Positions 31,913 through 47,528 of a DNA stretch of 64,000 nt are shown one piece after another (the first letter of the stretch is position 1; each line of letters begins with the position of its first letter). The translations under genes were made by a program, and so were the position numbers. Under the pieces are notes generated by a model that saw only the letters and a program-made list of their open reading frames with translations, did no database searches and had not been told where the DNA came from. Origin of the DNA: Orbicella franksi (taxonomy: Eukaryota); NCBI GenBank assembly GCA_964199315.1, contig OZ116699.1, forward strand, positions 32,674,001 to 32,738,000, given 5' to 3'.

Positions 31913-34900
31913 ATGCCTTCGTCAGACAAGAATAAACTAAAGGACCTGCACTTGGCTTCTTGTTTAGGAGACCTGAACAAACTAGCCGATCCTGGCCTTA
32001 CTGCTGACAGAAATGCTAATCCCTCAGCGTAAGTTGTGTTTTGTTGTCAGTGCTGTAGCAGTTATCAGGCCAGTATATTAACTCTATCATCATTTTTCCG
32101 TGTTCTGTGAAGTCACATTTCCTGCATTTTAAGAATCTTTTAGATTAAAGTAAGTGAGAACTAAAATCACGAGCTACAACAAAAAAGTTGCATTGCTGAC
32201 ATCGAAAACAAAGTAATATGTCCTTACATGAATAATAATTTCCATTTCTCAGGCTAGAAAATAGTACAATCTTCGGTTAGATCACATTAAATAAGTTTAC
32301 AACAGTCTTTAAGCCAACTGCGTGCACCATGTCATGCATGTTTATAGACTTGCCTGCGGTGAAAAATTAGATTAAAGGGCCATTGTCGCGATAAAACGTT
32401 TACAAAAGTAAACTAGGAGAAATATCCCAATGAAAGTGCTTTAATCTTCGCATTAGACTAAAAAGATCCCCAGGACTTGGAATTTGAAATTGCAGCAGAC
32501 CATATCCCATCAGAGTTCCTGCACGCTGACATCAGAGTGTGGAGTCGGAGACACCTAGTTTTCGTCAGCGATCAGCAGTCCAAGTTCCTTGCCCGTTCAA
32601 AGTCTTGGTACATCAATGTCACATTTATTAGATGTGCCGTGGAGTAACTCGTTGGTAAACGAAGATTCAAAACAGACCAAGCATTCGTTAACTTCGAATT
32701 TTCGGAAAAATCTATTGAGAATAAAAGTTTAATAGCTTAGTTTGCCTCTCGAACGAAGTGACTATTCTTTGGAACAAAGTGACTATTTGGTGGAACGAAG
32801 TGACTTTGATGGAACGAAGTGACCATGGAACGAATTGACCGTAAACCTGATTGGGTTTGATTGACACAATTTTTTTAACCAATAGGCATTTTAATACTAT
32901 CATGCAAACCATGAATTTGCCGCAGATCAGCGTGGAGTTTCATGTGCGTTTTGGTAATCTCTTTATCCGCCAGCTTTTGGCCTTTTTTTGTAAAGAATAT
33001 TTATCATCTTTATGTTGTGTGAAGGCCATGTCTGTTGAATACAAGCACATACACTTTACTTTCTTTCAACTTGCATTCACATCTGCAGCTATATAAAGTT
33101 TCCGATATTCATCCTCCCATCTTTTGTTCCTTTTTCTTTTCTATTTTTCTCTCCAACAAGACGGCTACAGGGGGAAAGTAGCTTTCGTCTTTAGCTGGCT
33201 CGAAAATCTCCTCTTGAGGACATTGTATTTCTCGACAGTATTCAACTCAAAACACATTATGCCGTTTAAATCTTTCATACATTACTAAGGAGTTCTTCAA
33301 TATATCGGTATTACCCTTTTCACATGCCTCACAAGGTCGATGGAGAAGGATTTTTCACACAAAATATATCATTGAACTTTGAAAACTTTTCCGTCAGATA
33401 AGAAATCAAATTGCCACACGTCCCTTAGAGTGTCAGTTATGCCCTTTAAGAATGAATCCAAGGATATGACAGTCAACAGTTTAAGGATTTCGTGGTGTAG
33501 CTCATTTAGTTATCTCTTATGCTTATTGTTCAATGAAGAGTTAGTCACAGACAGGGTTATAGCAGGAGCACATTCTGGTACTGTTCTTGATTTGTAAATT
33601 TTTCAGATTACATGGTAGAATGGCTTCATCATGACGATGTATCATACAGTATTTCCTCAAATAATAGCCACCTCTTGATTAGGTGTGAAGTTGTTCAGCC
33701 CCAAAGTTGATTTGCCCCTAACTGTTTAGCCTTCAACCAGAAGTTGACAACACTGTCTATTTCCCTTTTTTTAAGTGTGAATACAACAGTGAATGGTTGG
33801 GGGCTCACCAGCTAGGGGCTAAACAACATGTACAGTGTACATTTCTTGATTAATCCCCACTCAAAATAATTGTCCCCCTTCAAGGGGATTATTTGAAATG
33901 ATCCCCTCCCTCGAGTAATGCCTCTCACCCACTGACTCTCTTTGAATAAATTGCCCCTCACTCCAGTGTTTCTGCCAGAACGCACCATTGCGGCAATCCC
34001 GCATTACAATCAGAGATGGCCCCCAGAAAAATGAAAAAAGGGCCAATTTGACCCTTTCCTTTTACAAGACTCAGGCTTAACACAGGCATAATAATTAAAA
34101 AGCCATCCCAGGGCTCGAAATTGTGATCGATATGGTCGCCAATGCAACTAACATTTCATCCTTGACGACCAAAAATTCTGGTTTAGTCGCCATGATGGTG
34201 GCTAAATTTCTCTGTGTTGATGATTAATAATGGTTATTTTGTCACACATTATGTCCTTCTAGAAAATCGTATTGAAAGATCTTTGCTTCTAAAACATTCA
34301 ACATAAGAAAAGAAGTCAATTCATCCTTTTGCTTTGCTGTATTGATTCTCTCACATCGGAAAACTTCCAAATAGCTGACCTTGTTTGAAATCGCCCTATA
34401 ATGCATTGCAAACCCTTGACCATTGACTACATCATGTATGTATACATTCTCTTGTAATGCAGGGATCCTTCCTACTAGTGTCTGAAACTTAATTGAGTAG
34501 AAACACTTAGGGAAGCACTTACTATTAAATTTTATCATAGATCCTAACAAACTGCTTTATTTTCCTTGGTACCCTGATAGATTTTTTCCTTCTGTAACTT
34601 TCAATTTATTGGCCCCTTTCCTACAAAATTGGCCCCTAAAAAGGATCTTCAGGGGCCACTTTGGCCCTCAAGTAAAATTCTCTGGCTGAAACACTGCCTC
34701 ACCCTTCTATTCCTTACCATGTCCTTTGGTAATCAACCCTTCTCTCCCTACATCTCCCCTTTCATTCTCCTTCCCCCCCCCCCCCAGTAAATTAGGCATT
34801 TACTCCTTGAATATCCAATGGGATAACATTCAAGCTTTGATTTAATCATTACATACAACAGATAGTTTACAAAAGCACAGGTTTTGTGACAGTTTTTTGT

Positions 34901-37900
34901 TGTTGTTATAACATGCTTTTTATGCTTTTTCCTTTATTGCGTTGAGCTTTGCTATGGGTATAGGTGACTCCTTTAAAGCAATATTGAAAGAATCGTCCCC
35001 CTGGCTTAATCACTCCCCTCCTCAAGTAATTATCCCCTTTTGGTGCAAAAAAGGGGTAATACCCCCTGCTATTATTCAAAGAAATATGGTATGTTAAACA
35101 TCTTAAATTTTATTATTCAGTGATCTTTGATTATGCATACATAAGTTAATACTTATTAATAATTACAATAATAACACTTAATTTACATAGTGCCAAAATC
35201 CAAAAGTCCAATGTGCAGCACCAGAAAATATCCATACTCCTCCCACAGAGGGGATTGGAATTTCCTGGGGGGCAGGGGGTTCTCTAAGACCAAAAAATTT
35301 AAAGGACTGTAGCAAGTTTAGTTGGAATTTCCAGAGGGGTGGGAGGGTCTTGGAAAAAATCCCTTCTGTCGGGGAGGTATGGATATTCTCTGAAACTACA
35401 CAATAGTGCTCTAGAAAAAGTAACAAGGAAGATAAGCAATATACAATCATATCACGATAGGAAAATATCTAAAATTAGATAACAAAACAAAAAGGTTAGT
35501 TTTCATTAGTATGCACATTCAAAACAGTATAAAGAAGTTTAGCGTTTAGTGGTTACGTGTACAATTCAATATGCTTATAATCTGACTAAGCACTAATCTT
35601 ATCTTTGTAGATACATCAAGTCAGCCGATAAAGTTTACTTGAAAGCTCAGAGTCATGACCTGGAAGGTGATGAAGAGCATGCGTATGCCATGTACATGCG
35701 CTTTTTTAATATCATCTCCTTGATTAAAAAGACCAAGAAATACTCTGACAACAAGGTGAGTGCACTGGCATTATTTCAGATCTGCTTCTCTAGGGGAATG
35801 CGAGGTTTCAGAAAATATTGATACCCACCACAAGGAAGATGATTGGAGATTCTGAGCTAAAGGAGAGGTTTCAAAAGCAAGAGCTTTTAAAAGGAAAGCA
35901 AGTTGCATGAAGCTAACAAAACTCAAATTTCAAGATTACAGGTGCTAGGGTCTAAACTAATTGTTCTCTAGCCATAAGATCAATCTGAAAGTACTCCTGG
36001 CCAAGAAACACAATGCCCTCAGCCTCCTCACATGCTTAGTTGTACCTCCTCTAAATGCATGTAGATATATGGCAACAGTTGGTTTTGCTACCTGTCAAGT
36101 TCGCTACATGCAGATGTTTGCTACACACAACTTCCAGTTCGTTACCCATTTAATTTGTGTTCACTACTATCGATAAACTTTTAAGCTTCCTGAAATTAAA
36201 CTGTATCAGTGAAAATCAATCCAACCACATGCTTCTAGCTGATGCTTCTAAATAATTATAGAGACCTACATGTAAGATGTAACATGCGTGATGATTATGT
36301 TCTTTTATACACTGCCAAGCCAAACTCCGTTAGCTTAGGTAGCAAACTTGGCCTGTGAGTAGCGAACATGTAGCAAACTTGAGTGTAGCAAACTTGAATG
36401 TAGCAAACTCAAAAGGTAGCAAAACCAGCCTAAATCTAGATTCATCCCAAATACTTCCACAGTGATATTCAACTCTACAGACATTGTAGGGAACTGTAGA
36501 CTGTAGATCATTGAGCAGTAAATGGGAAAATGTGCATTTGTTGGTATTTAGATATGAAACAAAAAAACAGGTAATATTGTTTTAATATGTAACCCCAGTA
36601 AAGGCAGTATCCTATATACCACACTTTTCTTTGCCTACAAGTATGTAATATATATTGTAGAATTTGTAAAATTGGTATTTTCTTAATTGTAGAACTACTT
36701 TGACAATTTAATGGGGAAATCAAAAATCATCAAGTCTATAAACCGAGCAGAAGCACTGCAAAAAAGTCTCGATAAAAGGTTGGTTTCTTTGATTTTTTTC
36801 AATTCTCATGCTGCATGCCTGCACCTTGGTAGAGGAAGGAGGGGGCCAAACCCCACCTTTTTGATCTTGGTAGGCTCTATAAATTGTTTATAGAATGATG
36901 TTGGTGTACCAAACCAATCCTGTGGGAGCTGAACTCTTTTCTTATGTAAACACTTTCTTTTTTTTTACAATAAATTTGTATGGCTGCTGGTCACATGAGT
37001 GACAATGCTCTACGAAACATTCAGTCCAGTGATATTATTTTTCAATCTGGGTGGACCTTCCCTTTAGAACTCCAGGCCCACACATTTTACATACTCGGGC
37101 ACTTTTTATATGGATGCACCACTGCACCAGGGACATTTTGTAGTGCAAAATGACCTGCGAAGGCGTCAGCTAGGTAATTTATAATTCCTCCAGGATTTTT
37201 TATGTAACTATATGGTATCACTTTGTCAAGGGCAAACAATGGATCCAACAGTTAAAATAATGTATCATGATTAAGTTAAGTGAAATGTTGAACTCAAAAC
37301 AGTTAATGAATTGTTCATTTGACTGTGTAAAGGTACATTTGTTCAATCCAAGTACACCCTGTAAAACGTAATTACTGTGATTGTGCTGTTATCTGTGTTG
37401 AGGGCCTACAATATGTTTGTTCAGGTATGAAAAGCTTAGAGCTCAAAAAGAAGCTGACAAAAAAGCACAGGAAGAAGCAAAACGAAAAGAAGAGGAAGAC
37501 AAGAGTAACATGTTTTTTAGTTATTTATTAATAAAAGTATTTATAAAATAATGCAGTAAGAATTATTTATTGGACCTTCTGTTTGTCAGTAGGTAAACAT
37601 TTCACACTGTACTTGTTGTATTGCACGTTAAAATTGTCACATTTCTTTTGCCATTTCAAAATTATTCTGGAGTCATCCATGTACAAATTTATAACAAAAT
37701 GAATTTGAAATGAGTTACAAATAAACTCAATTGGAGGATAATTGTCAATTTCTGCAGAGTAAAACAAGGGACTCCTAAGAAGCAAATTTGACTATGCTAT
37801 CAATGAATTTCAAATCTCAGAAAATGTGTTCTCACTTGTACTCACACACTACATGTGTATGGTACTTGGGTACTTAAAGTTCCCAGTGTCTGAATGCAAC

Positions 37901-40900
37901 TGTATTTTGTGCTGGTGCCTCTAGAGGCATCAGTGCTTGTGTACATCCTGACTCATATTGAGCTGAAGGACCAGTGACATTTTTGAAAATCAGTTTGATA
38001 GGTTTAGACTGTAACATTTATTTTACATTTAAAATCCAGTGTTGACCAAGATTATTCAAAGTATTGCATGAGCTACTGATTGGGTTATGTGTAACAATGT
38101 TTGATGCTTGGACCCTTTTTTAAGCTAAGGGAACTTTGGTAATAGTTTCTTGAATAATAATTATAATAATTGTAGAAACAGAGCACAATTTCAATTCCTT
38201 TTATTTTTTTCTGTAGAAAATTTGGAATCGCTGAAGGCAAAGCATGGCAATGGAACAGACAGGTAAGTTAAAAATTTATAAAAAGTTCATAAATATAAAT
38301 TCAATATTGTATTATATTTGGGAGGCACGGTGGCCTCATGGTTAGTGCACTCGTCTCCAGATCGAGCGGTCCGGGTTTGAGCCCTGGCCGGGGACATTGT
38401 GTTGTGTTCTTGGGCAAGACACTTTACTCTCACAGTGCCTCTCTCCACCCGGGTGTATAAATGGGTACCGACGAATTTAATGCTGGGGGGGGAACCCTAC
38501 GATGGACTAGCGTCCCATCCAGGGGGAAGTTGAAATACTCCTTGTCGCTTCATGCTACTGAAACCGGGATAAGCTCTGGCCTGGTGGGCCACTTGGCTCG
38601 TATGCAGACTTTTACCTATTGTATTATATTGATACAAGACTATTGATGACACCATTCCACCTAGTAAATATTAGGAAACTCAATAAATCTGATGATTTTC
38701 TTTTTTAGAAGTGCTTTTACATAGTAATTATTGTAAATGTTTCAAGTGATCTCCATATTTGTCTGCTGTTGCTACAAGTTAGAGTCTACAAGGACTAGGG
38801 AGTTTGCCCAAATTCCCTGACAGTTTTTAGCTCAGGTGTGTTCCCTGGGTTAATTTAGAAAAGTAAAAACATATAACATGATTTCATGAAAGGGTTTATA
38901 AATCCTCATCAAAATCCCACAGTGCATCCAACGTCAGAGTGTTTTACAAAAAGTTGAACATGAATAAGTCTGTCAATAATTTAATTGATTAACATTTTAT
39001 TATCAGTGGTAGAAAATAATGTGAAATAAATGAACTTGTTCTAACTAAGGCATTATGTTGTTTATGTATTGTTTCAGTGACAGTGGTTTTGACAGCGATA
39101 TTGATTTGCTCTTGAATGGAAATTCTATTAGTTCATCCTCTGATGTTTATCAAAAGCTTAAGGTAGGTAACAATACGAATTTTATTTACTCATAGTTTCT
39201 TGTTTTAATTGTCAACTTCTTGCAAGTAGTTTAAATGAATGCTCATCTTGTTATACGTGTAAATGCCTCTTTTTCAGTCATTAATTGTTTTTTTTTTTTT
39301 TTTGCCACTAAGGTCAGTCATAATTCAATCCTCACACCGAAATCACAAGATAGTGGTAGTGGTAAGTGTTATATAGTATTCGTGACTAGTCTAAAGTAGG
39401 TTATATTTAACTAATCTGACTGACTGACAGAAAGTGGCTTGACTGACTGACTGACTGACTGACTGACTGACTGACTGACTGACTGACTGACTGATAGACT
39501 TAGAGATAGGAAAAAAGAAAACAAACATTGATTTACTTCAAAATTTGCAATCAAAATGACATTTTGCCTCAATCTCTCATACATGTTGTCGTGTGCTTTT
39601 CAATTTTTCATTTCTTAATTTTTCCTGCTAGAAAGTTAAATAATGACAAAGGGTGATATTTTATGATGATCTTTAGAACACCAGCAAATTAAGGTTCAGT
39701 CTTTAACTGAGCATAAACACTTTTAACATTTGTTGATTTGTCATTTGTGTTAGGTACACTAACTAGTGGTCTGGAGTCTCCAAGTTCCATGGCCAAATCA
39801 GCGGCTACAGATGGTTCACTCAGATGTGTAACAGCACAAGATCTGTACAACCTGCTAACACCAGAGAGTGAGTCCAAAATTCTGATCCTAGACTGCCGAC
39901 CTCATTCCATGTTTGTTGAGAATCACATCAGATGTTCATGTTGTGTAAATATACCAGCTGAACTGCTGGATCAAGGGTAAGAATATTATGTCTGTGCAAT
40001 AGTAAACAGTATTTTCACTCATGGTGTGCTACTGAGTAGAGTAGATCTGATCTGATCTCCAATATGGCCTTAAACGCTAGTAAGAAATATATACAAAAAG
40101 TGTGAAAGGGGGTATGCTTTGATATTATCTATGTGTAATAGCCTTCAGGACCTACAAAAGATAATCGATGAAAATTTGTTATGTCATAGTTATGCTATAT
40201 CTGAACTGGTTTATTGCCTGAAATAATGTGTTATCAACTGATATTTTCTGATAATGATACGTTTTCTTTTTTTAGGGTGTCAGTTGGCAGCATAGAAAGA
40301 AGATTGCCTGAGACAACAAGAAAGATTTGGAATAAAAGAGGACAAAAAGATTTTGTTATTTTAATGGATGAGTCAACAAAGATTGCAGACATTACACCTG
40401 AAAGCAGAATTCAAAGGCTCAAAGATGTGATATTTACCTTTGACTCATACAGTTCATTAAAGAATGAACCGCTCTTTCTTGATGGTGGATTCCATAGTTG
40501 GTTGTGGCATTATCCATCTGTTGCTCTGAAAGCAGAATTGCCAAAGGTAGCTTGAGACTAAGAAATATAGAAAAATATTGTACATTCAAAACATCAAAAC
40601 TGCCAAAAAAAACCTAAAGTCATTTATATTTCATAAGTAATTATAGAAATACAGCTGCATTTTGGCTCAATTTTGGCAATCAAGGGTGTACTGTAAAGTC
40701 AATCTATTGCTAATAGATTGAAAGAGAATTTGAGTCTACAAGATGACATTTTAGTGAATGAGAATGTGTCACATTGCCAGCAGCCATTTTGATGGCTATG
40801 ATTGCCATTTGTGTAATGTACTGCAGCCAGTACGTCTTTTCTTTGTAGCAAGGATGTCATCTGTGCCCTTTTACTCTATTAACAAATACCGTTCTTCACT

Positions 40901-43900
40901 CTTAGGTGCAGTCACAACCTAAACCTGTAACTCCCATAGATCTATCATCCCTAGACTACCCTGAACTTCCAGAAGAGAAAATATCATCACCTCAGTTGCC
41001 ATCATCTCCTGAAACTGGTCATCTTAACAGTAGCCTCCAGTATCCAGCCCTCCCAACGGCAGGTCTTCAAAATGTGGATGGCCAACTTCTTAACCCAAAA
41101 GGCAGTATTCAACAAGACAAATCGCTACCATCACCTTCCCCAGCTCCTTTCCAACCTACTCCCAATGTACCATCCTCAGGACCACTTCCAGGAGGGAAAG
41201 CTCCTTCAGAAGGTTTGAGTCCAGTACGCACACCTGGCCCAAACTATAATCAACCAGGAATTCCTCCAGCTGTCTCAGCTTCACTATCTGACAGAAAACT
41301 GTCGCATACTGGTCCTCAAAAATTGGATCCAAGGAACATGCCATCCTCACAACCTGGTGCTCCAATATTGCAATCGTCAGCACCAGGAATGCAGTCTTCA
41401 ATGCAAATTGCTCTACAGGCCATTATTTCAAATCCAGGAGGACCTAGACCACCAGGTTCTCAACCAAATATGACAGCACCACATCCTTCAGGTCAAACAG
41501 GTCTTCAAGCAAACACTCCTAACTCTGGTCCTCAAATGGCACCAAATACCCAACCATCTTTACTAAGTGCAACTGTTCCAAAGCCAGTTTTGCAACCTGG
41601 TGTGCCATTCTCAAGCCCTTCAAGCAAGCCATCTGCTCAACCTGGTATTTCACCACCCCAATCCACTATCTCACAGTCGACTTCATCTTCAAACATGTCA
41701 ACTCCTGGGACTCAGCCTGCTAGTGTGAATTCCACATCTTCAACTAGCCAAGTACACTCAGTGGCTCCACTGCAGGTTACTCAAACAATATCAACTTTAT
41801 CTTCTGCTGGAGGACCACAGCTATCTTCAAAATTATCAGTACCTCCCGAAGGCCCTGGAGTTGCTGTTCCACCTGTTTCTGGCCATATGCCTGGCCAACA
41901 GAGTGTGCAGCCAGGAAACCACCCACAAGTTCCATCAGTGAGTCAAGTGTCTCATGGTGGTACTCAAGTTCCTGGACAGTCCTCCCTTCCAGCAGCACAA
42001 CATCATCAGGTTGCCACTTCACCCATCCCAAGGACAGATTCAAGAAACAATCCAAATGGAAGGGATACAACTATTAATTCAAGTCAAGTTTCCCCTCCAG
42101 GACATGTAGTTAATTCTGATCAGAAGCCAACTCAGGATGTTCCTAGTGGATCCACAAAACAGCCACATGGTGGACAAAAGGTGTCAAAGTCTTCTCAACA
42201 GGCTGCTTCCAACAAGGCAACTGCCTATGTAACTACACCAGGGTTGCCACCTGGCTGGGAGAGAGTTGAAAGTGGAGACAAAGTTTACTACAAAAATCAC
42301 AATACTCATTCAACACATTGGAAACCACCCTCATCGGTGACAACACCTGCTGCACCACAATCTAGTGTGCAAAAGCCAGATCAATCTCAGTCAGGCACAA
42401 AAGTTGTTGCACCACAATCAAGTAGTGTAACAGGACTGCCACCGGGCTGGGAGAAAGTTGAAAGTGAAGGAAAAGTTTACTACAAAGATAACAATACTCA
42501 TACAACACATTGGCATCCACCCTCATCAGGGACAACACCTGCTGCACCACAATCTAGTGTGCAAAAGCAACAGCAGGCCCCTATAAAGAGACAATCTTCG
42601 GTAGAAAGGCCAATGCTGCGCAGATCCAATTCCTCACCAAACCTAAAAAAGCAGAGTGATCAGGGCACTTCTGGTCCTAAGAGACCGGTAATAGATCGCT
42701 TATCAAAACCAGACTCGGGGCAAACAGGAACAGCCAGACCAGTTATAAACCGCAGTGCTAAACCTTTGTCTGCCAACCAGCTTGACAGCTTTAACCCTAG
42801 CTATGGAGGGCTGGGAACCGGATTAACAGGACTCCGTAACCTGGGAAACACTTGTTATATGAACTCTGTTGTACAGTGCTTGAGCAGTGTTTCCCCTTTG
42901 GCTGCTTTTTTTATTTCAGGGGTTTACAGAGAAGATCTCAACAGAAGCAATCGAGATGGAACAAAGGGTAGGTGACAAAAGTTGAAATTCATGTCATGAT
43001 TTAAAATATGAATATAACATGTTTTTTGTTAAAGGACAACCATTATAAGATGGACTTACATACAATCTTTCTAGAAACAAAAATCAGTTCAAAATAGCAG
43101 GGAGTTTGAAAAACTGAGGTCATCTATAGCTGATAGTAAATTACAAAATAAACCAGGGCAAATGCAAGGGAAATGAGTTTGGGTTCAACATTACAGGGAG
43201 ATTGAAATAACCAAGTTGAAAATAATATCAGGTCCAGCTGTATTACACAGCTTTTTAAATAATGATCCTAGTTTGTTATCAACCAGTGCAAGTGCATATG
43301 CCCATTACAAAACAAATTATTTTTCAGGGGAACTAGCAGAGAGCTTTTCAGTACTTGTCAGAGTTCTGCATTCTGGACAATTCAAGTGTGTGTCGCCAGG
43401 AGATTTCAAACGAACAGTTGGAAAGTTTAAATCCCAGTTCTCTGGGTATGACCAACAAGATTCCCAGGAACTGTTAGCTTTCTTGATGGATGGCTTACAA
43501 GAGGATCTCAACAAGGTATTGTTGGTACTGAATAGGTATAATAAGAAGTAAGTTTCATTCTAGGCTATCATTTTAGACACAAATGTCAAATATTAAATGC
43601 CAAACCATTAGTAAGAGCAACGGTCTGCCAATATGGTATTGAAGTAGTATCATACCTAGGAGAGTAGCAATACTCTGTGTTGTACAATGTTACACAAACC
43701 AGAAAGACCCACCCTGCCCACCCGCCTACCTACCTGGTGCTTACATACCTACTACCTTCTTAACTCTCACTTTCCCCACCTACCTACTAATGTTCCCACN
43801 NNNNNNNNNNNNNNNNNNNNNNNNNNNNNNNNNNNNNNNNNNNNNNNNNNNNNNNNNNNNNNNNNNNNNNNNNNNNNNNNNNNNNNNNNNNNNNNNNNNN

Positions 43901-46900
43901 NNNNNNNNNNNNNNNNNNNNNNNNNNNNNNNNNNNNNNACCTAACTGGTTGCATACCTACCTACCTACCTTGCTACCCACCTCCCTACCTCTCTACCTAC
44001 TTACCTAGCTACCTACCTACCTTGCATCCCACGTACCTACCAATCTTCCTACCTCCCTCTTTCCCTACCTGTACACCTACCTATTCTTGAGAGTGAAATA
44101 GTTAGTAAGAAGTACTATTAAAATTTCAATAAATCAACAAATTTTTTTGTCATGTATGTTCCCTGTAGGTGAAGAGCAAGCCATATCTTAAGGCACCTGC
44201 TGATGATCTAGACCCTCAAACAGCTGCCAAGATTGCTTGGGAAAACCACAAGAAGAGGAATGAATCTATTATGGTGGAGTTGTTTGATGTAAGATGACAT
44301 CTATAGCTTTCTCTTCGATCAAAAAAGGAAGACCAGAGTTTAAGTGCACAAGGTTTGCTCTACTGATGTGCAAGTGGCAAGGTGTTCAATTACAACATTT
44401 GGTCTTTCACAAAGGGTTACAATAATAGTAATCTGACAACTGTGATTAAACACATGTGACTGTGCCACAATAACATAAAAAGCGATGTGTGAAAAACCAA
44501 GCAGAGACAAGAGTTGTGTTGTTTAATATAATGATTACACAATTGTTTGGTCATTTTTTTCAGGGTTTGTTCATGTCAACTGTAAAGTGTATGGTCTGTA
44601 GTAAAGAATCCAGGACTTTTGACACTTTTTCCAACCTTACTCTTCCACTGCCAGCCAATGCAAGTCGCTGCACTCTCCAGGTATGTGTATTGATTAATGG
44701 TAAAGGTAGGTAAAGTCTGCATTCGAGCCAACTGGCCCATCAGGCTGGAGCTTATCCCGGTTTCTGTAATATAAAGCGACTAGGAGTATTTCCTCTTCCC
44801 CCTGGATGGGATGCTAGTCTGTTGCAGGGTTACCCCCAGCAATAAATTCGCTGGTACCCATTTATACCTCTGGGTGGAGAGAGGCACTGTGAGAGTAAAG
44901 TGTCTTGCCCAAGAACACAACAAAATGTCCCTGGCCAGGGCTTAATCCTGGACCACTTGATCCGGAGATGAGCACAGTAACCATGAGGCCACCATGCCTC
45001 CACGTATTAATTAATAAATAACAATAATTAAGTTGATTTAGTCAACCATGATATGGAAGATGACAGTATGGATATTTCTAGCTACAATCAATAAATCTTG
45101 TTTCTAACAAGCAGACTGTGTCATCAAAAGACTACGGACGGAGGATTAGAATTTTGCCTTTATAGAATATACCTTAATGGGCTATTAATTTTGAGATTTG
45201 TTGAGATATTTTAGAAGTTATAGTTTATGTACTATTGTTTGGATGTGTAATATTTTTTGGAGTATTAATTGATTACTTATTTCAGGATTGCCTAGCCTTG
45301 TTTACAAAACCTGAGAAAATGTCAGGAGATGATAAATGGTAAGTATTTTAAATATTGACCCAATATCGTGTGCTGTGTCACCCAGCAGCCAATTTGAAAA
45401 CGAAATCTGAATGACTACAATGTATAAGGCACTGTGGTAGCCATCAGTGACAGGTCTAATTTGAATTTTTCATGTCAGGTTTTGTCCAAAGTGCCAACAA
45501 AGAAGGGAAGCCAGTAAAACAATTCAGATCTGGAGGCTGCCAGCCATCCTTGTTGTACATCTCAAACGGTAATCAAAAATGACTTTCCTTACACAAGCTT
45601 TAGTGTGTGCATCTATGAATCTATGATTCTTGAGAGGTACTTTAATTTGGAGGGTCTGTTATTTTCAGATTCAGATTTTTATTTGCACTATTTACAAACC
45701 TTCCACTGATTAAATTAAAACATTAACACAGAAAATGTAGAAATGGAAAAAATGTACAACCAAAACTAAATTGGGAAGTGCTCAGTGACCAAAGCCGCGT
45801 AATTGCTCTCAAGTTGGTCACTGACACGTACAAATAACTGACAAGACATATGTTATCAATAGTTATAAGACTTTCGAAAAGTCTTTTCCAATAATACTTT
45901 CCTTGACTGTTGGTTTCTTGCTTTTGACTTTATTGCTCAAAGATTGCCCTTAAGCAAAGCAAGAGAGTGTTGATTAAGCATAGGATTAAGCAAAGGTCGC
46001 CTTGTGGCAAGTCTTCATAGCAAGTTGTCTGTTGGCTTAGCAAGTACATAACTGTAGTTCATTTCATTACACCTGCTTTCAGTGTTACATGCATAGGCGA
46101 CATCTTTTGACCACATAAACGGCTGAAATACCATTTACCTGCGAAACTAGCAATTTTTCTGGTTATTAGCGGAACAAATGACAAGTATATACAATTACTG
46201 ACCTCAAATGAATGAAGAAGATTGTGGACTCCCAATTTACGGGATAATTCAAACAATTTTAGTGTAGTCGATCAGCTCTCAATAGTGACTTCTGGTAGAA
46301 TTAAGCTGCTACCGCTCACTTAATATTTGAAAGATGTAAACATTCAGAGCAGAGATAGTTGCTATGCATGTAACACTGAAAGCAGGTGTAAGGTCCATGT
46401 AGTAATCTTGTACATTTTTTGTAGATTTCAATATGAAGGGATGTGGCGTCAGAAACTTCAAACAGGCGTCTCCTTTCAAATGTCACAGTTGGACATGTCC
46501 AACTTTGTAGTGGGTCCAAAGTTTACAGCATGTTACAACCTGCATGCCGTTTCCAATCATTATGGAACCATGCATGGCGGACATTACACTGCATTCTGCA
46601 AGAGTGTTTATGATAAGAAGTGGTACAAGTTTGATGATCAGTATGTAACTGAGATGTCACCCAGAGAAGTTGTGGTATGTCTACTAGTGATCTTCTAGGT
46701 TTCATCTTGATAGTGAATATTAAATCATGTTACTCGAGGCTCTTTTTTAGGAAACAAATCTGGGGCACTCATGAGACAAGGAGTTATCCACAAGTGCTTC
46801 ATTTCATCCTTGACTCCCAGTAAAATTATTTCTTGTTCATAAATGAAATAGACCCTTTTCATAAATAGCCGCTGATTATAAATTAATTTGTCAGTATGAC

Positions 46901-47528
46901 AATTAGTCTTATTAACCTTGTTTTTCAGTTTATAATTTAGAAGAATTTTTAATCTAATACAAGGTCATTGTCAAGGCTAATTTAAATGCACACAAAGGAA
47001 TTTTTAATTGCCAGCCATTAATAAAGAGTCTCTTGCCCAAGTGTAGAGGAAGCACATAAATACTTGAATTGAGGAACAATTATTTTTGGCAACCTGCATT
47101 CATTCTGACTGTGGGTAAAATTCAACGGACAGACAGTTGGAATAAGTGCTTTTAATTATATTCCCATAAAACACATTAAACTGGGCATTCTTTGGTTTGG
47201 CATTTCTTTTACAAAGTAGAGTTGATATTTGAATGATTGTTGTGTTGTGTGGTTTCAGAAATTATCCATGTACTCACTCCAAGGAGGGTTATTTGAAATG
47301 ACAATGGGGAGGGTTCAAATAAGGGTGTGGGAAAGACTGGATAAATTTCTGGAACAATATCATATCATTTATCACACCACATCATACCATACCATAATTA
47401 GATCATATCATAATAAATTTATTATTTATGGCAGAAAATATTTGTTTCTTTTGCAGACTTCAGCCGGATATCTGCTGTTTTACACCTCATTTGATTTCCA
47501 ACCCCCAAAGTACTTAATCAAGTCATGA
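31913..47528 (+). CDS. USP8: Ubiquitin carboxyl-terminal hydrolase 8 (USP8/UBPY), ~1350 aa, 17 coding exons
   Basis: Exons 31913-32028, 35611-35755, 36693-36778, 37425-37504, 38217-38262, 39078-39162, 39313-39361, 39754-39976, 40276-40546, 40906-42967, 43328-43515, 44169-44288, 44564-44680, 45286-45338, 45479-45568, 46425-46674, 47457-47528. Phases consistent, total 4053 nt. MIT/USP8-dimer N-terminus ([12 protein letters not shown]), rhodanese domain ([17 protein letters not shown]), RSNSSP 14-3-3 site, Cys box [32 protein letters not shown] zinc ligands, His box [21 protein letters not shown]. Confidence 0.95.
32745..32851. mobile_element. Terminal fragment of a foldback-like element built of GAACGAAGTGAC subrepeats
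   Basis: Five short GAA(C/T)(G/A)AAGTGAC-like units, same style as 54802-54920 and 56470-56588. Confidence 0.6.
33964..34696. mobile_element. hAT-like non-autonomous element, 733 bp
   Basis: TIRs CAGTGTTTCTGCCAGA / TCTGGCTGAAACACTG (15/16 match). 8-bp flanks CCTCACTC and CCTCACCC (7/8 match) fit an hAT TSD. Confidence 0.8.
35212..35402. mobile_element. MITE with ~40-bp imperfect TIRs
   Basis: TGTGCAGCACCAGAAAATATCCATAC...GTATGGATATTCTCTGAAACTACACA. Confidence 0.75.
36078..36429. mobile_element. Foldback-like MITE with GTAGCAAAC subrepeats
   Basis: GTTGGTTTTGCTACCT at the left end and AGGTAGCAAAACCAGC at the right end. TTTGCTAC/GTAGCAAA units are mirrored on both arms. Confidence 0.7.
38320..38617 (+). 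mobile_element. tRNA-derived SINE with conserved central (Deu/Nin-type) domain
   Basis: Pol III A box TGGCCTCATGG and B box GGTTTGAGCCC. Core CTTGGGCAAGACACTTTACTCTCACAGTGCCTCTCTCCACCC.GGTGTATAAATGGGTACC. Tail CAGACTTTTACCT. A second full copy lies in reverse at 44703-45002. Confidence 0.9.
39441..39494. repeat. (GACT)13 microsatellite
   Basis: Direct reading. Confidence 0.95.
43715..44085. repeat. Degenerate (CCTA)n simple repeat spanning a 139-N assembly gap (43800-43938) in USP8 intron 11
   Basis: CCTACCTAC runs on both sides of the N stretch. Confidence 0.9.
44703..45002 (-). mobile_element. tRNA-derived SINE, second full-length copy
   Basis: Reverse complement aligns end to end with 38320-38617. 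Confidence 0.9.

Follow-up and report, generated by a model that had tools for sequence, protein, structure and literature searches.

The deubiquitinase USP8 (UBPY) is autoinhibited in humans by a WW-like domain that acts as a plug, an effect reinforced by 14-3-3 proteins (Caba et al. 2024, PMC11467669), and this autoinhibition is the mechanism that is broken in Cushing's disease. Autoinhibition of the human enzyme operates only in cis and is dependent on linker length (PMC11467669). The vertebrate WW-like domain, which comprises residues 645-684 of the human protein, constitutes the Pfam family PF20625, WW_USP8 (Kakihara 2021, PMC8576004; Caba et al. 2024, PMC11467669). Moreover, the WW domain and the 14-3-3 motif have been considered exclusive to vertebrates and the mechanism "of unknown origin", with Drosophila as the named invertebrate example (PMC11467669). 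Here, we describe the USP8 gene of the coral Orbicella franksi, found in a 64,000-nt stretch of DNA (GCA_964199315.1, contig OZ116699.1, positions 32,674,001 to 32,738,000) that is referred to as the window in its full length. Its predicted product carries two canonical WW domains (WW1 and WW2) in tandem before the catalytic domain, and its comparison with other USP8 proteins supports the descent of the vertebrate plug from a canonical WW domain.

The closest described system is the vertebrate WW_USP8 module, with which the coral module shares the gene, the position, the order WW, RSxSSP, SH3 motif and Cys box, and roughly the same spacing from the catalytic Cys, as well as the GLPxGW start, the first Trp, the equivalent of His677 and the terminal PP. 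However, the coral protein contains two domains, keeps the second Trp, the Tyr and the Thr (and, in WW1, also the His), and gives no match of WW1 or WW2 to PF20625 at E values up to 1. The USP8 proteins of other non-vertebrates (e.g., Acropora digitifera, Hydra vulgaris, Branchiostoma floridae, Crassostrea virginica and Oscarella lobularis) exhibit an orthologous architecture and the same ligand-face residues, although they have one WW domain and, in most bilaterians, a loop 1 with two extra residues. Among solved sequences, the nearest to the coral WW domains are those of NEDD4L, WWP1 and ITCH, followed by YAP. The first three, NEDD4-family HECT ligases whose WW domains are class I PPxY binders, are the best matches (E = 6e-21 to 6e-15) and have in common with the coral domains the motif TTPGLPxGWE...YYxNHNT..T.W, whereas they are ubiquitin ligases instead of deubiquitinases and coral WW2 contains Asn in place of His. 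YAP, SAV1, KIBRA and MAGI2 are also among the PDB matches, and the tandem modules with one atypical member (KIBRA, MAGI, SAV1 and YAP) resemble the coral pair in having two WW domains with unequal ligand sites. Such tandems work through a very short and ordered linker, while the coral linker is 35 residues long and predicted to be disordered, and the atypical trait in the coral is the replacement of His by Asn and not the loss of the second Trp.

By its domain content, the gene is confirmed as a scleractinian USP8 orthologue. The encoded order is MIT/USP8_dimer, rhodanese, a long disordered linker, WW-WW, the 14-3-3 motif, two SH3 motifs and the USP catalytic domain. In the N-terminal part, the exons of the window are 68-91% identical to residues 1-363 of the coral USP8 P0030, and PF08969 (USP8_dimer/MIT) is present in both P0030 and the coral USP8 P0145, the rhodanese match of P0030 being below the threshold. 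Pfam UCH is matched by three exon open reading frames (ORFs), the catalytic Cys and His of the Cys and His boxes are aligned in relatives, RSxSxP and an SH3 motif lie between the WW and catalytic domains, and the closest named proteins are the USP8 of Desmophyllum pertusum and Acropora digitifera. An earlier note on this DNA, made from the letters alone, had named the gene as USP8 and listed RRSNSSP at 42619-42639 and two STAM-type SH3 motifs; the identity is borne out by the N-terminal domains, the catalytic domain and these motifs, all of which are present. The whole WW stretch is located in a single open frame of 689 codons (40906-42972) that runs into the USP Cys box and in which Pfam detects WW (PF00397, two stretches) and UCH. 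A splice from 42966 to 43327 with GT..AG ends follows. Two studies support it by poly-A RNA-seq contigs, which show that the exon is expressed, and, in contrast, it was not seen in a DNA run.

A WW domain is recognizable by two Trp with a separation of approximately 20-23 residues and by a Pro at the third position past the second Trp, and both coral copies read W-x21-W-x2-P. Scored alone against PF00397, WW1 reaches 33.6 bits and WW2 32.0 bits, above the gathering threshold of 26.9. From the aligned tandem region, AlphaFold2 (AF2) predicts that each WW forms an antiparallel sheet of three strands on its own (strands at 15-20, 23-28 and 33-35 for WW1 and at 79-84, 87-92 and 97-99 for WW2), with a predicted local distance difference test (pLDDT) value of ~70 and a disordered linker between the two. 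The two copies of the duplication unit are 145 nt long and 88% identical, with a start-to-start offset of 192 nt, equal to 64 codons and in frame. A 145-nt in-frame repeat is far beyond chance. Tandem Repeats Finder reported nothing at the WW tandem, and a search for two diverged copies picked up the repeat. By its repeat structure, the WW pair originated when a 64-codon unit, formed by the WW domain and its linker, was duplicated in tandem and in frame. Thus, the true WW domains claimed in the earlier note, with starts at 42241 and 42433, the 192-nt duplication and the identical linker are all found in place, and, within the WW1-WW2-USP model that it had proposed, the WW pair is predicted to form two folded units. 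Of the two copies, WW2 lies closest to the 14-3-3 motif and the catalytic domain, and alignment matches it to the single WW of other taxa. In the same exon, a module encoding APQSS occurs three times (42334-42366, 42391-42423 and 42526-42558); one of these modules, shorter than the others, stands between the WW domains and is absent from relatives with the closer WW spacing described below. Another feature of this region is an 18-residue peptide after each WW that is as conserved as the WW core across copies and species, which is odd for a linker.

The tandem is common to 13 related coral sequences, with identities to the window down to 68% over the tandem stretch, while sequences below ~73% identity, including Acropora, contain one WW domain. 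Start-to-start spacing of the WW domains among these relatives is either 64 or 45-46 residues. WW1 shows GWER and D/N-H-N in 13 of the 13 tandem relatives aligned; in WW2, GWEK is found in ~90% and D/N-N-N in 12 of 13, P0029 being the relative that keeps His. Counted over distinct sequences, the Tyr-pocket residue is His in WW1 (11/11) and Asn in WW2 (13/13). At the DNA level, WW1 of the window is 90-93% identical to WW1 of three relatives versus 88% to its own WW2, and WW2 of the window is 91-93% identical to WW2 of two relatives and 86% to that of the third. The tree of WW copies lacks resolution over its 138 columns; the approximately unbiased (AU) test rejects topologies that pair WW1 and WW2 of the window (p = 0.0016) and does not reject a single clade of all WW2 (p = 0.29). 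Because orthologous copies are closer than paralogous ones and the AU test rejects sisterhood, the duplication is, on these comparisons, older than the split of the tandem-bearing corals and ancestral to a scleractinian group, instead of recent in one species. The earlier note had called the domains recently duplicated, a description that these data do not support. Regarding its spread, the tandem is restricted to the coral group of the window among the 230 Cys-box sequences examined, and two WW domains are present in none of 80 further cluster representatives with a Cys box (taken from the best 150 of 5419 matches). The wide occurrence of tandem WW domains in invertebrate USP8, which the earlier note had contemplated as an objection, is thus not observed in these sequences.

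The survey of USP8 covered a collection of named proteins, cluster representatives (1.84 billion, scanned profile-free) and a cluster look-up. A single PF00397 WW that precedes the catalytic Cys by ~100 residues is found in USP8 of Acropora, Hydra, Xenia, many molluscs (Haliotis, oysters), Lingula, Tubulanus, Priapulus, sea stars (Asterias), sea urchins, a sea cucumber, crinoids, the hemichordate Glandiceps, three Branchiostoma entries and the sponges Ephydatia and Oscarella. In sharks, bony fishes and tetrapods, PF20625 is found in place of PF00397. The motif RSxSSP is common to cnidarians and bilaterians and was not found in the two sponges examined (Ephydatia and Oscarella). Neither PF00397 nor PF20625 was detected in USP8 of Lepidoptera, lamprey and hagfish, which keep RSxSSP. 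The single canonical WW is, as judged from this survey, the rule in non-vertebrate USP8, and only the tandem is lineage-specific. When PF00397 is mapped over USP8 orthologues, as the earlier note had proposed, the tandem stands as a feature of one lineage, while the canonical WW as such, treated there as special to the coral gene, extends from sponges to amphioxus. This single-WW architecture is already visible in public automatic annotations, and literature searches on invertebrate USP8 with WW or PPxY retrieved no description within the library searched.

Several lineages in the survey lack a recognizable WW. In the cyclostomes Lampetra (P0232), Petromyzon (P0233) and Myxine (P0155), no WW model is found before the catalytic domain, and hagfish keeps RSFSSP and the SH3 motif. 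Since cyclostomes have neither form, the transition from the canonical to the atypical WW cannot yet be placed on the vertebrate stem. In Lepidoptera (P0148-P0176), the WW is lost and RS(Q/H)SSP is kept ~55-60 residues before the Cys box, so that the 14-3-3 motif is independent of the WW. Moreover, in the annotated protein P0030 of Desmophyllum pertusum, PPPGSVHHSPRSQP runs straight into RSNSSP at residues ~780-792 and the WW region is missing, which would reflect an intron called in error or else a true deletion.

The homology of the canonical and vertebrate domains can be followed with MAFFT. Aligned from the WW through the Cys box, the sequences are collinear across phyla and comprise GLPxGW...(W or M)xPP, RSxSSP, Px(V/I)(D/N)RxxKP and the Cys box. 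The window and Latimeria are 44% identical over 161 residues (E = 1e-25). Comparison by hhalign of 17 invertebrate WW domains with 12 vertebrate WW-like domains yields a probability of 96.9% (E = 1.5e-10) over 36 gap-free columns. Furthermore, the amphioxus WW is above the threshold for both families, with 45.9 bits for PF00397 and 30.5 bits for PF20625 (cut-off 23.8). Collinearity, the hhalign result and the amphioxus domain that passes both models together support the descent of the vertebrate autoinhibitory WW-like domain from a bona fide canonical WW, as the earlier note had proposed. This result is independent of the coral in the window. The WW ends a median of 104 residues ahead of the catalytic Cys (range 93-167, n = 207), with 110 for WW2 of the window and 104 for a primate. 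Four ligand-face residues are swapped in vertebrates, where Arg667 stands in place of Tyr, Ser671 of His, Val676 of Thr and Met678 of Trp, and Arg, Ser, Val and Met/Leu occupy these positions in 44 of 44 vertebrate WW-like domains; this replacement predates the cartilaginous and bony vertebrates sampled. We hold the architecture of the coral module and its homology with the vertebrate one with high confidence. The published claim that the WW and the 14-3-3 motif are exclusive to vertebrates is contradicted by these alignments, and the Drosophila lineage, from which the invertebrate example was taken, is one without a USP8 WW.

The residues that vertebrates replaced are those that form the ligand face of WW domains, counted here back from the second Trp as W-11, W-7, W-2 and the second Trp itself, which we take to correspond to Y188, H192, T197 and W199 of YAP. 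In 78 distinct single-WW USP8 proteins, this face contains an aromatic residue in 77, His in 77 and Thr in 76. In the coral, WW1 has the complete class I face, with Tyr (W-11), His (W-7), Thr (W-2) and the second Trp, and the face of WW2 is incomplete, as Asn replaces His. These residues belong to the binding surface and not to the fold core, so their retention would be best explained by selection for a proline-rich ligand. Since the ligand face is kept and the nearest solved WW domains are of the NEDD4 family, the coral domains most likely dock proline-rich partners, and for binding of the PPxY type in particular we see about an even chance. Pin1-like class IV WW domains need an Arg/Ser-rich loop 1 that holds the phosphate. 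Loop 1 of the coral domains, ESGDK or ESEGK, is short and devoid of Arg and thus lacks the class IV feature, and for this reason a Pin1-like phospho-Ser/Thr-Pro mode is unlikely. The recruitment of PPxY or pS/T-P proteins and the different regulatory logic that the earlier note had suggested are, accordingly, hypotheses. The two copies are probably not equivalent: WW2 probably has an altered or weakened PPxY binding and may play another role, e.g., as a helper or as an intramolecular plug, and a division of labour between WW1 and WW2 after the duplication is plausible.

PPxY motifs are also found within USP8 proteins themselves. Directly after the last USP strand, the C-terminal tail of the coral protein contains PPKY, which brings a PPxY motif and the WW domains together in one polypeptide. 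L009, a tandem relative, and Desmophyllum have exactly this tail, and P0145 likewise contains PPKY. An xPPx tail is found in oyster, Tubulanus, Priapulus, amphioxus, sea urchin and lamprey, and not in the jawed vertebrates examined. PPxY stands directly before the WW in Oscarella (P0301, 813-823, PPPSY-LPRGW), and PPSY is found nine residues before the WW in Priapulus (P0141, 613-616); both are possible cis ligands.

These observations can be assembled into an account in which WW1 and WW2 would dock proline-rich, PPxY-type partners beside the catalytic domain, under the same control by 14-3-3 and STAM as in mammals. After the duplication, WW1 would have kept the ancestral ligand site, whereas the proximal WW2 would have swapped His for Asn. 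Taken as a whole, from the coral USP8 and its ancestral WW to PPxY docking and the divergence of the copies, we favour this account with moderate confidence. Several points weigh against it. A conserved ligand face points to the existence of a ligand and does not specify which one. No PPxY, LPxY or PPLP was found in the 440-residue disordered part of the coral protein, no candidate PPxY partner was identified, and the C-terminal tail reads PPKC, PPTF or PPRH in other corals, so that it is not PPxY throughout. A complex prediction of WW2 (P0001:503-546) with the catalytic domain of P0030 (residues 850-1200), the full-length coral USP8 closest to that of the window, gave a score of 0.00, a value obtained with no controls that speaks neither way. 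Moreover, the age deduced for the duplication is a relative one. The two window copies are identical at 26 of 29 third codon positions and at 43 of 45 positions of the linker, a pattern that a modest age, or gene conversion on a local scale, could also account for.

The alternative to be weighed first is that the coral WW is an intramolecular plug of the ubiquitin-binding S1 pocket, with docking reinforced by 14-3-3 at RSNSSP. In that case, autoinhibition would be ancestral in metazoans and ligand binding would be secondary or absent, although both could coexist if a ligand released the plug. The order WW, RSxSSP, SH3 motif and Cys box is the same in cnidarians and bilaterians, and the spacing from the WW to the catalytic Cys is alike from sponges to vertebrates, as would suit a mechanism that, in humans, acts in cis and depends on linker length. 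At the position of human K657, nearly every aligned WW domain has Lys or Arg, the residues F1014 and P955, through which the catalytic domain makes contact, are conserved in phyla that bear a WW, and the proximal WW2 lost its His, as did vertebrates. However, the equivalent of human R667, which is essential for the interface between the WW and the catalytic domain, is Tyr in invertebrates, and the ligand-face residues dropped by vertebrates are strongly conserved in invertebrates, where a pure plug would not need them. We therefore consider the plug rather unlikely as the primary function of the coral domains. Coupling between the loss of the Pro at P955 and the loss of the WW was also considered and discarded: the Pro is replaced in Lepidoptera (Glu) and lamprey (His), but hagfish keeps it without a WW and two vertebrates with the WW-like domain carry Ser, so that the two losses are not strictly coupled and the relation is too weak to use. 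In the AF2 model of P0145:830-1316, from the WW to the C-terminus, the WW has pLDDT values of 86-89, the linker is disordered and the tail decreases to 57 in the last block. This output gives no contacts and, thus, neither cis docking nor tail binding is readable from it.

A different explanation regards the second WW as a neutral and redundant by-product of duplication in a repeat-prone low-complexity exon, with the function of the protein unchanged. Although exon 8 is indeed rich in short repeats, such as the three APQSS modules, and the length of the inter-WW linker varies among relatives, the fold-defining residues are kept in both copies across the 13 relatives, down to 68% identity, the difference between His and Asn is uniform save in one relative, whereas a decaying copy would vary, and both copies are transcribed. 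Consequently, neutral redundancy appears very unlikely.

That the tandem is an assembly artefact, with a single WW written twice, is next to impossible: one public short-read contig, L003 (Logan; protein P0011), holds only one 192-nt unit, but the copies differ at 12% of bases, a 214-nt contig (42347-42560, inter-WW spacer plus WW2) that is possible only with two copies is found in independent DNA and RNA runs with a depth like that of its flanks in both, long-contig assemblies of related corals hold both copies, and no joint skipping 192 nt was seen among RNA and DNA contigs. In L003, copy 1 is joined to what follows copy 2, and the switch falls inside the identical 37-mer (window 42376/42568), a stretch that exceeds the assembler's word length of 31. 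Because the switch occurs within this 37-mer, the single unit of L003 is more likely an artefact, probably a graph collapse through which such contigs under-count WW domains, although a rare single-unit allele could also lie behind it.

The comparison corrects the published vertebrate-only claim and gives the plug an origin in an ordinary ligand-binding WW with four ligand residues replaced, whereas the tandem itself is a lineage-specific variant with an informative asymmetry. Proteins of amphioxus, oyster, Hydra or coral make both the origin of autoinhibition and the ancestral WW ligand testable. In this regard, the coral tandem provides a natural pair, with the ancestral site in one copy and the other altered at the position of vertebrate Ser671. 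A more speculative extension, which we regard as distinctly improbable, is that non-vertebrate USP8 reads the same PPxY degrons as NEDD4 ligases, with WW1 of the coral lineage in charge of ligand capture and WW2 on its way to becoming a ligand-blind plug. The change from His to Asn in WW2 would then replay independently the vertebrate step from His to Ser at the same site, and the C-terminal PPKY tail could act as a cis ligand. If this were true, the eraser and the writer of ubiquitin would share one PPxY motif.

The features of the gene are collected in Table 1, where only the boundaries of exons 8 and 9 are set by RNA contigs and those of the remaining USP8 exons are approximate.

Table 1. 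Coordinates of the USP8 gene and its elements in the window (positions numbered from the first letter of the 64,000-nt stretch).
Feature	Position	Strand	Basis
USP8/UBPY orthologue, ~15 exons	31913..47528	+	tblastn with coral USP8 proteins P0030 and P0145; Pfam UCH on exon ORFs
Large exon 8	40904..42966	+	RNA contigs, two studies; start 40904, with upstream-exon sequence as loose end
S/P/Q-rich low-complexity linker, ~440 residues (S 17.5%, P 17.3%, Q 10.5%)	40904..42231	+	
Duplication unit, copy 1	42239..42383	+	Repeat search, direct repeat
WW1, canonical, class I ligand face complete (Tyr, His, Thr, second Trp)	42241..42330	+	Pfam, AF2
37-nt linker encoding 12 residues	42340..42376	+	Identical to 42532-42568
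Duplication unit, copy 2 (+192 nt)	42431..42575	+	Repeat search, direct repeat
WW2, canonical fold residues, Tyr-pocket His replaced by Asn	42433..42522	+	Pfam; alignment
RSNSSP, mode-I 14-3-3 motif, aligned with vertebrate RSYSSP	42622..42639	+	Cross-phylum alignments
SH3-binding motif PVIDRLSKP, Px(V/I)(D/N)RxxKP type	42685..42711	+	
SH3-binding motif PVINRSAKP	42739..42765	+	
USP Cys box, catalytic Cys codon 42853-42855	42829..42867	+	Pfam UCH; alignments
Exon 9 (USP domain)	43327..43517	+	Spliced RNA contigs; Pfam UCH
Last exon, C-terminal tail with PPKY at 47502-47513	47457..47528	+	

Apart from these elements, intron 9 of USP8 contains a run of N at 43800-43938. In addition, an interspersed repeat of ~290 nt is found in USP8 introns as an inverted pair (38321-38612 and 44712-45001) with 86-89% complementarity. 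This pair brackets exons 5-11, and such pairs can favour back-splicing. The ORF-like translation of the same repeat recurs in the window.

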